A stretch of 63,818 nt of DNA, counting the filler, from Lenisia limosa (Eukaryota; Protista; Breviatea), in assembly GCA_001655205.1 (NCBI GenBank). It is 10 parts of 10 records of this genome, joined end to end, with 100 filler letters (N's around TTAATTAATTAA, not from the genome) between each part and the next. Parts side by side here need not be neighbours in the genome. Positions count along the whole stretch, not along the records: positions 48,110 to 57,299 come from LPNZ01010712.1; 9 more parts are not named here. One strand, 5' to 3'. A program made the position numbers and the translations under genes. Positions 47,174-55,110 of this stretch are shown piece after piece; position 1 is the first letter of the stretch, and every line of letters starts with the position of its first letter. A model generated the notes under the pieces. It ran no database searches. It was not told the origin of the DNA and saw nothing but the letters and a program-made list of their open reading frames with translations.

Positions 47174-48110
47174 NNNNNNNNNNNNNNNNNNNNNNNNNNN
47201 NNNNNNNNNNNNNNNNNNNNNNNNNNNNNNNNNNNNNNNNNNNNNNNNNNNNNNNNNNNNNNNNNNNNNNNNNNNNNNNNNNNNNNNNNNNNNNNNNNNN
47301 NNNCAATTTCTCCCCCGACCCTCAGCTCTTAGTTTAAATTTATTTTGGTCCAAGGCCCGGGTACCGGGGAACCACATGTCCAAAGTGAGTAACAATGGGT
47401 AGACAATACCATTTTCACTATTTTCCCGCAGGTGTACCCTCAAGGTTTAATTTTCAGAAAAAAACTAACGGCTAAAATGAACTCAGACAACCTGAAACCC
47501 CCCCCCGGTAAATCATCCCGGGGGTAGCACAGCGGCAGTCCCAAAATTTGGACTTAATACGTTTATATAACCACTGTAGAACCCAAATAGTATGAACCAT
47601 GAACCTAAGATTCTCATATTACTTTCCANNNNNNNNNNNNNNNNNNNNNNNNNNNNNNNNNNNNNNGAAAGTCGACTTTTAGGCCTGGAACCCCAGGTAA
47701 ATATTATTACCACCCCCTCCTAGAAGTTGTTTTCTCCTCCGCGCTATTTTTTTGGAACTCTGGTTAGTCCTGATAGGTTTGTTATATTTATTACTTGTGA
47801 GAAGTTAGACAGCGTTAGATTGCGGATTCGCGTCATTTTTCATTTTTAGTCTTTCTTGAAATTTCAAAAGTAAGCTTGTTTCCTTATTAATTTCAGCATA
47901 TTGAGGTAAAAAAATTGTTGTTACAACCCAATTTGAACCAAGTTATGTTAAGTTTAATTATTTTAGCCTTTGTTCACATTGTTTAATCAGCAATTGTCTT
48001 CAAAAGGCTNNNNNNNNNNNNNNNNNNNNNNNNNNNNNNNNNNNNNNNNNNNNTTAATTAATTAANNNNNNNNNNNNNNNNNNNNNNNNNNNNNNNNNNN
48101 NNNNNNNNNC

Positions 48111-51100
48111 CTGCATACCGCTGGAATGGCATCAGCAATAGCCTTGAAACGGGCAAACTCTTCAGCATGGTTACATTTCGACACCGGGAATGCGTTCTAA
48201 AACATAAAATTGGAAAAAGGAACTTATGACAAGAGGGACTGGGGAGGGAGGCGTTCCATCCAAACCTTTCCTCTCTTGATGAGCTTCTGGTACACAAAGT
48301 TCCTTCTGCCGTTGGGATACATGAGAGAGGGGTTGACAAAGATGTCAGAGGTGCTGTCGGNNNNNNNNNNNNNNNNNNNNNNNNNNNNNNNNNNNNNNNN
48401 NNNNNNNNNNNNNNNNNNNNNNNNNNNNNNNNNNNNNNNNNNNNNNNNNNNNNNNNNNNNNNTGGTTGAATCTGGTAAAGGAAAGGACCAAATAGTATTT
48501 GAACCAAACCGACTTTGGAAGAGGCAAAGAGGGCGGTTGGAGATAGTAGTGGGAATTCTGTAGTACGGATAGGCAATACTGCATAAGTTGCGGAACTCTG
48601 AGACGAGGAAGCCCTGAAAAGTAATTGGAATGAGGGGTGTACTATCATAGAATGTCCCATGTTGAAGGCCAACGTTGGGAAGCGCCTGGAAAAGGCCCAA
48701 AAGACTTCGGACAATGTCATCATGAAGTCGTACTCTGCGTACTCTCTACATGGTCAAAATAGTAGGCTTTTCAAACCTCTGGAATTGCCATAACTGGCCA
48801 GTCATGTCCATTCTTCTGGGCCCTCATGTCAACCTAATAAGCTAAGATGGGAAATAGGAATTGCGCATGTGGTTAACAAAAGATGCAGTTTTCCCTGTGA
48901 TCTACATGTAAATATTATATTTTTGTAGTGCGATACGTTTTTGGAGAATATAATGATATAATATTATAATAGTATATCAAATATGGTAAATTATATGATA
49001 TAATATAAAAATGCTTATTTCTCTTAACAATAACCAAGAGTCTTCCCTTGAATGCATTTGAACTGTATGTCCATTCATCCAGTTGGCCTCCCACTTGGCT
49101 GAGCAAATAGGCGTTCTTGCGTGCATGCAGCTCGGGAATCTGATTAGCGGCAGGTAGGCGAGGACGGGGCAACTAAGACTTCATATACGTATACAGATAG
49201 CAGCATGCATGAGTGATTCCTTTGGAAGTGTATCCAAAAACCAGGTACCTTCAGGGGGTTGTCGAGATACTTTTTGTTCTTCTTCTTGCCGATGTTGTAC
49301 TCCTCAGATGAGAGGGGCTTGTAAGGTAGATCCTCCATTTTCTACGTGGGTAATACCAGCCACCCAATATCTTCGAGAAATCTCATCATTTATATGTGTC
49401 GGACCACTTGCAGTAAAAAAACACGTCCTGAATGGAGAGCTAAATTCAAGGCAGTCTACTTAGTATATATTTGGTGACGCAACTTGATCACGAAGACACC
49501 CCCCCCCCCCNNNNNNNNNNNNNNNNNNNNNNNNNNNNNNNNNNNNNNNNNNNNNNNNNNNNNNNNNNNNNNNNNNNNNNNNNNNNNNNNNNNNNNNNNN
49601 NNNNNNNCGGATTTCTTGGTCGAAGAATTTCGAGACTTGTTCGTAGATCTACGATCGTCAAAACGCAGCCCATGTAAAGCCTCCATCAACCCCCCAACGT
49701 CATTGAAGTTATTGAAGCCATAGTTTTCAGGGCGGCCATGGCGGTAAGTGAAGGACTCCCTCAGAAGACTGAAGTCCACTGACCCTCCGTTTTGCGGCAC
49801 CAAGGGAACAATCATTCTTGCAAGGGCTTCAGGTCTTGGCCTCTGTAGTGTTAGGTTCAAAGTTGAAGGTGGCAAAATGAGATGCTATTCCTGTAAATAC
49901 ACACAAGCATCTGTTTAATTTGATTAATATAAGCTCAAGTAGAAAGACGACAAAAGGCCCAAGTCTAGCGACATATCATCCCATACGTCAAGAAGAATAG
50001 TTTTTAACTTGACATATTTATACTCATCTCAACACCGCCAAAGCCAACCACTCTAGTGCTTGTGGCGTAATTGATCACCTTGTCCTCCTCATCACTATCC
50101 TCCTTCTCCTCAATATTCTCCGGGCCGGACCAGCCGACACTCAGCGTGCCGGATTGGGCAATGAAGCTCTGGGCCTGGCCCTTCTCTGTCGTCGGGTCCG
50201 ACTGTGACCACCCTGAAGGGTCAACCAAGCCTTCTCCTTCATGTCTCGATGACACTTCAGCAAAAAACTATTGATCATCACTCTAGCCGCACCTACCGGT
50301 GGAGACGGATTTGTTGGCGTGTTGAGATATAACAAAGTCCTTTGCAGCCATCGCGGCGGTCATTTTATCCACACCCTTTGGGGCAGCTGTGCCCCACGCC
50401 TGCGTGTTAGAGCGAAATATGAAAGTGAACATCAGGAGAATGTCCTTTGCTTTTCATGATGCGATTATTGAGAAAATCAAAGCAAGGCGCAATAGGCATA
50501 GGCATACCTTATTACGACCATCTGGTGTCCATACATCTCCAGCTGAATAGGTTACTTTCAAATGCAAACCAGCGTTATTAAAAACCAAATGATATGCTTT
50601 GCAGTCCATTGTGAATGAGAACGTACAACTTAGAAGAATACCAGCAGCTGTTATTAAAATTTTATAATGTGAGAAAAGAAGAGAATATACCANNNNNNNN
50701 NNNNNNNNNNNNNNNNNNNNNNNNNNNNNNNNNNNNNNNNNNNNNNNNNNNNNNNNNNNNNNNNNNNNNNNNNNNNNNNNNNNNNNNNNNNNNNNNNNNN
50801 NNNNNNNNNNNNNNNNNNNNNNNTGGGCCCCGGCCTTTGGTGCGCCCCATCCTGAGTAGAAATGAGATGCTGTACACGTGGTACCTCCGTCAAAACCATC
50901 ATACCATTACAGTTTCAAAAGCGACTGCCGATGATAGCATACCATCTGGTCCTGAGACGGACTGGGGTGCGGGAGAAGGGCTCGGCTTCGTCCATGGATT
51001 CTGAGGCTGAAAAGTCAGACTGTGTATTAACTACTGGGAATACACATGTAGCATCAAAGCAATTGAACATTGCTACCTTAGGGGAGGCAGTTTTAGCAGG

Positions 51101-52107
51101 AGCACTCCATTCCTGGGTAGCTGTGGGTGCTGGTGTTCCCCATCCTCCTTGCTATGCTTGGTGAGAGCCGCGGAGTGTGTGGTGAATAGAGTTGCCATAA
51201 ATGTTACAAATATTAGAACAATGCAAACACTAACTTGCTGGGGTTTCTGCTGGGTAGTCGGTGCAGGGGTACCCCACCCGCCTGTCTAGACAGGCGGTAT
51301 GTTAGAAGAAAGGAAGTTAATAGCAACATGTAGATAGTACGTGAAAATCACACAATTTACATCCACATGGTAATAGACATGTTACCTGAGGCTGTTTGGG
51401 TTGCTGGGGTTGGACAGTTGGAGCCGCACCCCATCCGGCAGCCTTGTGGTGAGAAATAATCTGGCCAATGGGGGAAGTAGAGCTTTGCAATAGGAAGACA
51501 ATGCAAGTGTCGGGTCTTGCTTACCTGTGCCTGAGGTTGCACCAGTTTCTGTGTCGTTGGTGCAGGATTGCCCCATCCCTTGATTGTAAGAAGAACCTAT
51601 CACATCGTGATGTCAGTAATTGCAACAAGGCAAGTCGATGGGATCTGGTATTAAAACAAAGTTAGTCAAACAACATGAAGGAAAGAAGCACGCGCAGTAA
51701 CCTGAGAGGTCTGTGTTTGTTCTGGTGCAGGGCCAGTCCGTGGTGGCACCTGCTGCGTAAATACCACACTCTGAAATCCAAATGTAAACTCCTCTTTTGT
51801 TAAGATTTCAGAAATTTCCATAAAAACACAGAGAACAATTCATAGAAGAGTGTGTTACACGCCACTAACCTGTTGGGGAGGGGCAGAGGGAGACTGCTCA
51901 GAAGGACCTTAATGGTTGTGAGACAGACAACACGTATCCCAACACCCACTTTTGGAATAGTCAAATCCAAGGTCAACCTAAATGCATTATTAAATGTAAT
52001 ATCAAGAGATGGAGCTTATAAGACAAACAAAAAATATCACATAGAACACAGCGTACAACTTGCTTTTCCGAAGACTTCGACTTCTTTCTTCTTCTTCCTC
52101 CTCCCAT
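48111..52107 (-). CDS. GW/WG-repeat protein with LOTUS/OST-HTH-like domains (3' end in gap)
   Basis: ATG at 52107 (MGGGRRRKKSKSSEKQ). Phase-0 mini-exons 51525-51578 (GWGNPAP..), 51386-51442 (AAGWGAAP..), 51235-51285 (TGGWGTPAP..) and 51077-51150 (QGGWG[T]PAP.. with a 1-nt deficit); then GWGAPK, AWGTAAP, SGWSQ, VGWSG; then MIVPLVPQNGGSVDFSLLRESFTYRHGRPENYGFNNFNDVGGLMEAL, YLLSQVGGQLDEWTYSSNAFKGRLL and DIVRSLLGLFQALPNGFLVSEFRNLCSIAYP. Confidence 0.7.
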
Positions 52108-52366
52108 TGTTAAAAAGATCAAGAAAAGGCGAGGAAAGGAAGTTTTTAACAAAGTTTCACTCAAATCTTGGCGCTTGGTGATTATACGCTCTTCCCCCCC
52201 CCCCTCCTGCTCTCCATCTTCCCATCTGTAGTATACATAAAAATAACAGCAATAACACAAAATATAAACTGAATAACCTTGTGGCTGCAAAACGTGATTG
52301 CAAGGTTCGAACGTCTTGACCTTCTCTCGTACTGGATTGTGGATTTTTTCATGCCTGTTTTGAAGA

Positions 52367-55110
52367 ATGTCCTCTTCTGACATAATTGAACCTGCAAACG
52401 GATCTTCTAGCCCACAGAGCAATTCAACTGATGAAGCAATCGCACCCCAGCCACTTTTTTCATGTCCTCTGTGCCAACAGGTAAGATCATACTTTACCGA
52501 CTCATTTAAACGAGCAAACATATATAATTTCATTGTTGAAAACACTGTCCAATGGTCACTCTCAAGCGCTCGGATGAGGTGATAGAAACGTTTCTGGTCC
52601 GGGACATTGTCAAGGCGCTGGAACCCCTCGAAGGCGTGTCAAATATCTCCACATTATTACAGGTGAGATTGACGAGGGTTCTTGGTAACAATGAGGGAGA
52701 ATAAATATTGTCGTGTTCTTCTTTCGACCTTTTGTCACCCCAAAGTGCCCGGTTTGCTTCGAAGATTATTCTGTCAGCACTATTCCCCAGACTCTTGTGT
52801 GTGGTCACACGTTCTGCAACGGATGTCTCAGCCAGTGGGGGCTGCACTTTTAAGATAATAATGAAATACCTGATTTTTAGATCTATTGCTTAATATATAT
52901 TATCAACCCAGAAATATCATTTTATCATATCATATGTATAATATACTAGTAATACATCTGATATAATATGATATATCCAATGAATGAAGTAGATATGACA
53001 AAATGCTTTTTTATTATAATTTTTTTAAAAGTTATCAACCCTCAGAATTCGTCGAAAATCCCCAGCACCACCATCAGAAGCCAACCCTGATGCAGATGTT
53101 GAAAGTTGGCATGGAATGTATATTTTATTACTCATGGCAGAGGATGATGTTACCATATTTGCAACATTTGACGCTTCAGATATGATCAATGACATGCAAC
53201 AGGCTTCTGTGATGTATAGCGTTGTGTTTAATAGAAACGTAAGCTTAACGATAATGCACAGGCGCTTTACTCTTCAGCGGAAGGTTTTTCTCCCTGCATT
53301 CGCTGCTGGTGTTGTCCAGGCCAGTTTGTTCGTTGCGGCCTTTTCCATTTGCAGACCGTTCCTTCCTCATCTCATCGCACGACTGGTGGGCAGTGAGGAT
53401 GGAATTATGAATCTTGTACTCTATATATGGTATGTATTATATGTATTATATAATTATAGAAACCATAAACCTTTACTGCAATACTATCGTTTTTTTTTAT
53501 TAACTCCCCCCCCCCCCNNNNNNNNNNNNNNNNNNNNNNNNNNNNNNNNNNNNNNNNNNNNNNNNNNNNNNNNNNNNNNNNNNNNNNNNNNNNNNNNNNN
53601 NNNNNNNNNNNNNNNNNNNNNNNNNNNNNNNNNNNNNNNNNNNNNNNNNNNNNNNNNNNNNNNNNNNNNNNNNNNNNNNNNNNNNNNNNNNNNNNNNNNN
53701 NNNNNNNNNNNNNNNNNNNNNNNNNNNNNNNNNNNNNNNNNNNNNNNNNNNNNNNNNNNNNCCTTTCTGCCATTTCGGGAGGATGTGTTGCATTTGGCAT
53801 GGCACATGGTCTCACTGCAGGCAGTATGGATAGTGTATGTGGGCAATATTAGGCACAACCGGGTTCGCCAAGCGATTGGAACTAATGAATCTTTTCCTTT
53901 TTCTTGATACTCTGTACAAATATTCTCCATCGTTATAGAGTCTTATCTCAGATTATGGAAATGGAGATTATACATGAAATACCTATGACTCACGTTCACC
54001 CCATTAGTCTGCCTTGGGGTGGTCGCATCTTATCAACGCTACAACGGGCATTTGGGGCGCCTGGGCCTCTACAGGGTTTGCCACTCTCTTCTTCCAGGTG
54101 GGCTGACAAGGGCGCGGGGTTGTCCATTTATCTGATTTGACTCTTTAGTCCCCTATGTCTATATTGGCATTCATGAAGAATACTGTCAGGAGTTACAAGC
54201 GGGTCAAATGTGTACGTGAATGCATTCATAACCCATGGTAAGAGTTGTGTCAGAAATCTGCATCACCTTTTCGAATCCGAAATGGACTAATTAAACTTCT
54301 ACCAGATCATGATATACATATTCTCATTTGTGAACTGAATTGAATTGCGACGTATTTCCTGGATAACGGTTTAGGTTCTTTTCCGATGTGCATAACACTC
54401 TTTTGTTCGGCGTATTGCCTCTTGAATGTTTGTGGTGCTCTAGAAGAGAAGCTAGATGAATACTGATGATATGTACACTGACCTACCCAGGTACATACAT
54501 TCTTATGGATATTGCTTCTTATGCAGGACTTCGTTACTTCAAGTACAAGAACGAAGAATCCCCTCCCTTCGACTACAAACGTGAGAATTCTCACTGTTAA
54601 TAGCACACATGTTCCTGTTACACACTCTTTGTATTCCTCTCACCACTTCAGCATACCTTGAGATCTTCCTGAATGTAAGCCTTTGGATGCCTATTGTCAT
54701 TCTTTTTTCTTGTATCTTGGCTGACCGTCGCCTCAGAGCTCATACCGACTACTGACCACTTTGTCGGCTGCCGCGGTTGCTGACCTTTTGTTCAAAGCGC
54801 TTCCCGAGGTACTGCTAATAAATCGTATCATTATAATGAGGCGCAGTCGCATAGGCCTTGCACATAACTGTATAGGCCGTGTGCCCTGAAAACCCGATTG
54901 TTTTGACCCTGGCTGTTGCTGGTATTTCTCAAGTTGGGGGGGGGGGGGNNNNNNNNNNNNNNNNNNNNNNNNNNNNNNNNNNNNNNNNNNNNNNNNNNNN
55001 NNNNNNNNGTGTAGGCAGTGACAACGTTTATTCCTCTGGATGCCTCTGGTCTGGGGCAGAGGGTGTCATGGCAGCCCCAAAGCTCTATATTTGTCTAGCT
55101 CCTTTATCTT
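52367..55110 (+). CDS. RING-finger protein with probable transmembrane segments; head-to-head with the GW gene (~260 bp apart)
   Basis: ATG 52367; exon ~52746-52834 encodes CPVCFEDYSVSTIPQTLVCGHTFCNGCL (C3HC4-type ligands 1-6). Later exons are hydrophobic (VFLPAFAAGVVQASLFVAAFSIC; LTTLSAAAVADLLFKALPEAVCPENPIVLTLAVAGISQ). 3' structure uncertain. Confidence 0.6.

Follow-up and report, generated by a model that had tools for sequence, protein, structure and literature searches.

A candidate Argonaute-hook array, probably joined to folded modules of no detected family, in Lenisia limosa

Introduction

Could one protein of a non-animal eukaryote carry both an array of Argonaute-binding tryptophan motifs and a set of LOTUS domains? 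A locus of the breviate Lenisia limosa raises this question. It lies in a stretch of 63,818 nucleotides (nt), hereafter called the window, which consists of ten parts of GenBank assembly GCA_001655205.1 joined end to end; the part concerned comes from record LPNZ01010712.1. A sequence-only reading had proposed that a gene at positions 48111-52107—hereafter called the GW gene—encodes a series of GWG motifs on paralogous mini-exons, followed by three segments with the LOTUS/OST-HTH pattern. Effector proteins are generally plugged onto Argonautes by GW/WG hooks, and what a small-RNA pathway does in a given organism can be read from the domain that the hook carries. To our knowledge, a hook–LOTUS fusion is undescribed for any characterised protein, and in a full-text literature search with LOTUS, GW-repeat and Argonaute terms, “GW repeat” was absent from the matches listed. 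Here we report that the tryptophan-motif array is real and expressed, that it is most probably joined in one polypeptide to folded modules of no detected family, and that the assignment of these modules to LOTUS rests at present on weak leads.

Structure and expression of the GW gene

Is the proposed gene real? Three-frame translation of 48110-52400 places the GWG peptides and the later pieces of open reading frame (ORF) on the minus strand, and the plus strand of the same interval has nothing comparable. Two public runs from one study cover the locus—X1, with an even, DNA-like depth, and X2, a polyA RNA library—and their contigs were aligned onto 48110-53900 for gap sizes, splice joints and RNA depth. 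The gene model was built on L001, a gap-free 16.5-kb contig of an ENA assembly (also L002), which was reached through the record of protein P0001. The model has a single open frame of 573 residues, running from the ATG at 52107 to the last donor site in the piece at 48119, and 21 introns of 31-261 nt, all of which are GT-AG. Fourteen of the 21 splice joints are among the RNA joints and loose ends listed for the polyA contigs (exons 1-2, 5-6, 6-7, 7-8, 10-11 and 12-13, plus all those from exon 14 through exon 22). The GW gene is expressed as spliced polyA RNA.

The gene does not end at 48111, where the sequence-only reading had closed it. The transcript extends at least 539 nt beyond exon 22, onto sequence that is absent from both the window piece and L001, and the model therefore lacks the C-terminus, which is estimated at up to ~180 residues. 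All that is known of this continuation is the next ten residues, NGIGLAQVSD, as read from the RNA contig.

The tryptophan-motif tract

Residues 1-297 contain 11 Trp residues, which are 9-34 residues apart. Five of them form GWG motifs (GWGNPAP, GWGAAP, GGWGTPAP twice, and GWGAPK), each on a separate exon (exons 5, 6, 7, 8 and 10, of 54, 57, 51, 75 and 87 nt, respectively), and the others form the motifs EWS, NPW, VWT, AWG and GWS (twice). How far is this arrangement from chance? Among 20000 composition-matched shuffles of the 297-residue tract, none had as many as five GWG motifs, and only three matched the eight out of 11 Trp residues that have a neighbouring Gly. In the RNA, exons 5-6, 6-7 and 7-8 are joined precisely at the predicted GT-AG sites, and the GWG and WG/GW array is thus transcribed and spliced as had been proposed. 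The proposed mini-exon size of 51-75 nt holds for exons 5-8, while exon 10, which carries the fifth GWG, is longer.

What kind of tract is this? Together, P, Q, T, S, G and A account for 65% of it and hydrophobic residues (ILVMFYW) for 16%, and the tract is probably intrinsically disordered. Its composition is 3.7% W, 9-11% each of G, A and S, and 12% each of Q and P, with little L, I and M (1.3% each), Y (0.7%), F (1.7%) and no C (0%); N and D are also low. The Argonaute-binding WG/GW domains described in the literature (PMC2910046) are enriched in W, G, S, A, N and D, and they contain little L, I, M, Y, C and F. The tract shows the published depletion (L, I, M, Y and C) together with the richness in G, A, S and W, and yet P and Q dominate it. 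The Trp spacing fits, as does the composition in part, and we consider this tract a candidate domain of the Argonaute-hook type.

The arrangement of the exons bears on how the array may have arisen. Exons 5-8 are in phase 0 on both sides, and each corresponds to one GGWG-(T/A)-PAP-...-Q-rich unit of ~17-25 residues; four of the five GWG units thus lie each on an in-phase mini-exon of their own, the fifth being in exon 10. Growth by exon duplication, as suggested earlier, is a reasonable origin for this layout, but the duplications would be old, because the units are only 63-77% identical at the DNA level over ~30 nt around GGATGGGG, and the introns between the GWG exons gave no alignment among themselves.

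Which partners might the tryptophans bind, if not an Argonaute? One alternative is that they are ligands of endocytic or trafficking adaptor ears (DPW/NPW/WxxF type), which would make the protein a membrane-traffic accessory factor. The tract does contain a single NPW, at residues 144-146, but this is the only one of the 11 Trp residues in such a context, the dominant one being G-W-G; no DPF, NPF, WxxF or clathrin-box motif occurs in the tract, and the basic N-terminus looks nuclear. We regard the adaptor explanation as highly improbable. A reading of the W motifs as Atg8-interacting motifs or LC3-interacting regions (AIM/LIR) was ruled out, as no L, I or V is found at +3. Myristoylation of the MGGG start was likewise ruled out, since residue 6 is Arg.

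A more serious alternative, which we still consider unlikely, dispenses with Argonaute altogether: the tract would bind another partner with tryptophan pockets (CCR4-NOT via CNOT9/NOT1, or PAN3), or would act as a condensate sticker. The GW/WG repeats of GW182 act as effector motifs that contact deadenylase complexes (PMC2965232, PMC3384334), LOTUS proteins such as MARF1 bind CCR4-NOT themselves (PMC6168497), and a P/Q-rich low-complexity composition is typical of condensate-forming regions. On the other hand, the GWG units are regular and flanked by small residues, and L, I, M, Y and C are depleted, which fits the description of an Argonaute hook at least equally well; the sequence data here do not separate one partner from another.

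Table 1. Coordinates of the GW gene and of the assembly gaps within it (residue numbers refer to the 573-residue frame; NLS, nuclear localization signal)
Feature	Window positions	Strand	Content	Support or corresponding sequence
GW gene, part within the piece	48119..52107	minus	22 exons, 573 codons; 3′ end missing	model on gap-free L001
Exon 1	52057..52107	minus	ATG and basic, NLS-like N-terminus (MGGGRRRKKSKSS...)	RNA loose end connects 51977 with the final 14 nt of the exon
Exon 5	51525..51578	minus	54 nt, phase 0-0, GWGNPAP unit	RNA joint 51442/51525
Exon 6	51386..51442	minus	57 nt, phase 0-0, GWGAAP unit	RNA joints on both sides
Exon 7	51235..51285	minus	51 nt, phase 0-0, GGWGTPAP unit	RNA joints on both sides
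Exon 8	51077..51151	minus	75 nt, phase 0-0, GGWGTPAP unit and EWS	RNA joint 51151/51235
Exon 9	50943..51006	minus	NPW motif, P/S-rich	gene model; joints not among the RNA joints listed
Exon 10, start	50824..50851	minus	GWGAPK; exon of 87 nt, extending 59 nt into N gap 50693-50823	L001 7893-7979; RNA loose end at 50543 matches the last 25 nt of the exon
Exons 11-13	50034..50542	minus	residues 192-297: VWT, AWG, two GWS, acidic stretch; putatively disordered region ends	RNA contigs 50056-50213 and 50296-50398, plus loose ends
Exons 14-15	49608..49842	minus	residues 298-370, LOTUS-like segment 1; exon 15 ends 34 (or 43) nt inside N gap	RNA joint 49648/49699
Exons 16-18	48777..49341	minus	residues 371-446, basic proline-rich linker, no recognised family	every joint in RNA
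Exons 19-21	48266..48745	minus	residues 447-547, LOTUS-like segment 2 and downstream; first 36 nt of exon 21 in N gap	RNA joints and 33 letters read through the N gap
Exon 22	48119..48196	minus	residues 548-573, start of possible third segment; donor follows, next exon outside the piece	RNA joint 48196/48266; loose end of at least 255 letters before 48119
N gap	48361-48462		N-length error -38 nt	L001 10262-10325
N gap	49511-49607		N-length error -49 nt	L001 9166-9213
N gap	50693-50823		N-length error +29 nt	L001 7921-8080

Continuity of the two halves

Does the tract belong to the same polypeptide as the region that follows it? The alternative is a pair of adjacent genes: a GW protein of ~306 residues, ending at a TAA after exon 13 (~50004), and a separate gene downstream. 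The joint between exons 13 and 14 is indeed missing from the RNA joints listed, the RNA depth is zero in bin 49856-50049, and the long RNA contig begins inside exon 14. However, exon 14 is preceded by a good acceptor and by a CTAAC branch motif 12 nt upstream, which argues for an internal exon; only one GT donor of exon 13 joins exon 14 in frame; and an intron would be expected to leave zero depth between these exons. The 13-14 joint is thus a prediction from the sequence, supported by the lack of intervening RNA depth. We consider two genes improbable, and the GW gene is most probably one gene, in which the tryptophan-motif tract is joined to folded modules of no detected family.

The window contains three runs of N within this gene, and L001 agrees with the window on both flanks of each. 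The real gap sizes, given by L001 and run X1, are 64, 48 and 160 nt, as compared to 102, 97 and 131 N in the window, and the reading frame continues uninterrupted through all three once the real letters are inserted. All three gaps adjoin G or C homopolymers of 12-13 bases, which accounts for the breaks in the assembly. The contig L001 itself terminates just past a C13 run. A single A/T mismatch between the window and the X1/L001 copy occurs at position 50632, within intron 10-11.

The C-terminal region

The residues after 297 are of a different character: 33% of them are ILVMFYW, as compared to 16% in the N-terminal tract. These residues, at least 276 in number, have an ordinary globular composition and belong to no detectable family. 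The sequence-only reading had placed three LOTUS-pattern segments here. They correspond to residues 298-370 (segment 1, exons 14-15), residues 447-520 (segment 2, exons 19-21) and residue 555 onward (segment 3, exon 22). The hydrophobic LOTUS pattern can be discerned by eye in segments 1 and 2, while segment 3 is truncated at the edge of the piece; none of the three gained significant statistical support.

Segment 1 had, moreover, been read from unspliced letters. The RNA removes the 50-nt intron 49649-49698 from within exons 14-15, and the frame shifts. This intron is a trap for an unspliced reading: if translated, it yields a helix-like sequence (..GGLMEALHGL..) that resembles LOTUS helix 3, and this helix is not in the protein, because its letters are spliced out. 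Intron 19-20 (48614-48673) is of a different kind, being 60 nt long, in frame and free of stops; its retention would add 20 residues to segment 2 and keep the frame.

Are these segments LOTUS domains? First, we searched Pfam at E-values up to 10, and found no match for the nine unspliced ORF pieces, for spliced residues 298-372 and 447-525, or for the spliced linker and tail; neither OST-HTH nor MARF1_LOTUS matched anywhere in the 573 available residues of the GW protein. In the same search, the LOTUS domain of TDRD7 (PDB 3rco) scored 56 bits (E 3e-15) as a control. A phmmer search of exon 14 against the PDB sequences, at E-values up to 10, also gave no match. Second, a hidden Markov model (HMM) of TDRD7 alone, whose bait was human TDRD7 residues 1-74 (100% identical to PDB 3rco_A), scored the GW protein at -5 bits by hmmsearch with all HMMER filters off. 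Third, pairwise Smith-Waterman alignments of the three segments and the linker revealed no similarity above that of shuffles; by sequence, the segments do not qualify as repeats of a single domain.

Profile–profile comparison gave a more graded picture. Using hhalign with a LOTUS profile of 89 TDRD7-type sequences plus the PDB sequences of Tejas, TDRD5 and Oskar, segment 2 scored 17.9 (P 0.005, probability 7%), which none of 150 shuffles matched, and it aligns in register with the first helix, first strand and second helix of LOTUS. The alignment of segment 1 is also in register, over 47 columns that include the Gly-Phe before helix 3, but its score of 12.6 was matched by 15 out of 150 shuffles. 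Against this profile, segment 3 and the linker did not rise above noise. The true LOTUS domains of Oskar, TDRD5 and Tejas, which represent three other subfamilies, reach 60-64 with 97% probability against the TDRD7-only profile, as compared to 12-18 (1-7%) for the candidates.

A positive sign comes from the protein-language-model features of exon 14. OST-HTH/LOTUS ranked first among the named families (score 0.84, with 36 out of 100 hits), and all of the other named sets among its neighbours are also winged-helix domains; by the calibration of the method itself, this result is a lead only. Exon 20 alone, and exons 19-20 with their in-frame intron—a poor choice of query—were unrecognised by the same features. 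AlphaFold2 models of contiguous pieces showed two helices each, for exon 14 (predicted local distance difference test score, pLDDT, 59) and for exon 19 plus intron plus exon 20 (pLDDT 50), and these pLDDT values were too low for a fold search.

How should these results be read? The C-terminal half may be an orphan folded region without any LOTUS domain, in which the L..G.v.LS...GF pattern fits a loose helix-strand-helix template by chance. The Pfam and hmmsearch results speak for this explanation, as do the shuffles that equal segment 1, the noise-level score of segment 3, the positive controls that score four times higher, the mutual dissimilarity of the segments and the failure of exon 20 to be recognised. 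Divergent LOTUS domains, such as those of nematodes, can nevertheless escape HMM searches, and the winged-helix neighbours of exon 14 and the in-register alignment of segment 2, which outscored all 150 shuffles, argue in the opposite direction. We hold the balance between the two to be even. LOTUS membership is not demonstrated for any segment, and only weak leads remain; one or more of the segments may be a winged helix of the LOTUS type, although we lean slightly against it.

Relatives and genomic surroundings

Does the GW gene have relatives? A HMMER search against 1.84 billion representative proteins, with exons 19-21 read through in frame as the query, returned only P0001—a bacterial-style ORF call from this same genome—and two low-complexity chance matches. 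A word-index search with the P0001 fragment gave only the self-match, and an exact search of JGI metagenome contigs for 38 nt of exon, together with a protein-pattern search, gave no match. The GW gene thus appears to be an orphan within the reach of these searches. Pfam gave no usable match for neighbouring ORFs of the 16.5-kb contig, and an Rfam search of the contig had no match.

Two introns of the gene deserve mention. Intron 18-19 (window 48746-48776, L001 9948-9978) is an unusually short GT-AG intron of 31 nt, which is confirmed by an RNA joint; the other introns here are 42-261 nt long. The longest of them, intron 17-18 (261 nt), contains an AT-rich palindromic stretch at window ~48940-48980 (L002 15613-15642). 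This stretch matched nothing in Rfam, and it lacks terminal inverted repeats of the miniature inverted-repeat transposable element (MITE) type within 600 nt.

RNA contigs at window 52247-53385 and from 53762 onward indicate a divergent neighbour gene on the plus strand, whose GT-start joint from 53385 to 53762 crosses another N gap. Its ORF pieces have no Pfam match. The first of its ORFs starts near 52367, ~260 bp from the ATG of the GW gene, and the two genes may therefore share a bidirectional promoter.

Discussion

How might such a protein work? Each Trp, with its small flanking residues, would insert into a tryptophan-binding pocket of a partner, the likeliest being the PIWI domain of an Argonaute, as for GW182/TNRC6, NRPE1, SPT5L, Tas3 and Wag1. 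In the human Ago2–GW182 structures, a Trp spacing like the one here, mostly 11-34 residues, suffices to reach separate pockets, and one scaffold molecule could hold one or several loaded Argonautes. The C-terminal part would contain small helical modules, two or three in number and perhaps of a winged-helix or LOTUS-like kind, which may supply the second contact of the scaffold, with RNA or a helicase. The N-terminus is basic, which suggests import into the nucleus.

We tentatively take this multivalent platform of W motifs, with Argonaute as its likeliest partner and with possible winged-helix or LOTUS-like modules, as the best explanation of the locus, and the hook function of the array as a well-founded hypothesis. 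Several observations weigh against it. The plant hook domains contain far less P and Q than this tract, and GW motifs have other partners as well, the deadenylase complexes mentioned above among them. Seven joints, including the 13-14 joint that links both halves, are not among the RNA joints listed. No homologues that could show constraint were found in the protein and metagenome searches. For the modules, the missing OST-HTH match in the spliced segments, the lack of similarity among them and profile scores far below those of the LOTUS controls all count on the same side. The full proposal—a single scaffold of a non-animal eukaryote that unites a multivalent Argonaute hook with two or three highly divergent LOTUS modules—is distinctly unlikely on this evidence.

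If it were true, such a scaffold would form a bridge from small-RNA effector complexes to either structured RNA or a DEAD-box helicase, and the link between LOTUS and small RNAs would have arisen independently of the animal germline piRNA pathway. It would also connect two scaffold principles that have so far been seen side by side only in animal germ granules, where they belong to separate proteins. Confirmation by a structure model would make this architecture one of real interest. The GW gene has a value of its own as well: a putative orphan hook protein with a new folded partner, from a lineage without detectable relatives among public proteins, offers a ready entry into the silencing machinery of its host. 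The layout, in which in-phase mini-exons carry one unit each, also illustrates neatly how a disordered binding array could expand by exon duplication.

Comparison with known systems

How does the GW protein compare with known scaffolds? It is not a member of the GW182 family. Like GW182/TNRC6/Gawky, it has an N-terminal region that is rich in GW and Q and probably disordered, with Trp residues ~10-30 residues apart; unlike them, it has no UBA, PAM2, RRM or silencing-domain signature in the 573 available residues (Pfam), and no sequence similarity to them was found.

The WG/GW platforms—the C-terminal domain of NRPE1, SPT5L/KTF1, SPT6L, Tas3 and Wag1/CnjB—differ from the GW protein in several respects. 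Pro and Gln are far more abundant in its tract; its Trp residues number 11, as compared to 18-45 in the plant platforms; and each repeat unit lies on a mini-exon of its own. Its link to Argonaute is, in addition, predicted from sequence. The likeness is nevertheless broad: a repetitive, apparently disordered tract in which Trp-Gly pairs are mainly kept, with small residues flanking Trp, depletion of L, I, M, Y and C, many copies per protein, and attachment to an unrelated functional domain.

Among the LOTUS proteins (Oskar, TDRD5/7, Tejas/Tapas, MARF1, and C. elegans MIP-1/EGGD-1 and LOTR-1), real members reach the 97% profile probability given above, in contrast to 1-7% for the segments here. 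Segments 1 and 2 nonetheless accommodate the hydrophobic pattern of these proteins, in which helix 1, strand 1 and helix 2 are followed by a Gly-aromatic motif ahead of helix 3. The MIP-1-type proteins combine small LOTUS modules with long disordered regions and serve as scaffolds in small-RNA granules (PMC8331183, PMC8616582), and the GW protein would resemble them in setting its putative LOTUS modules beside a long, probably disordered region.

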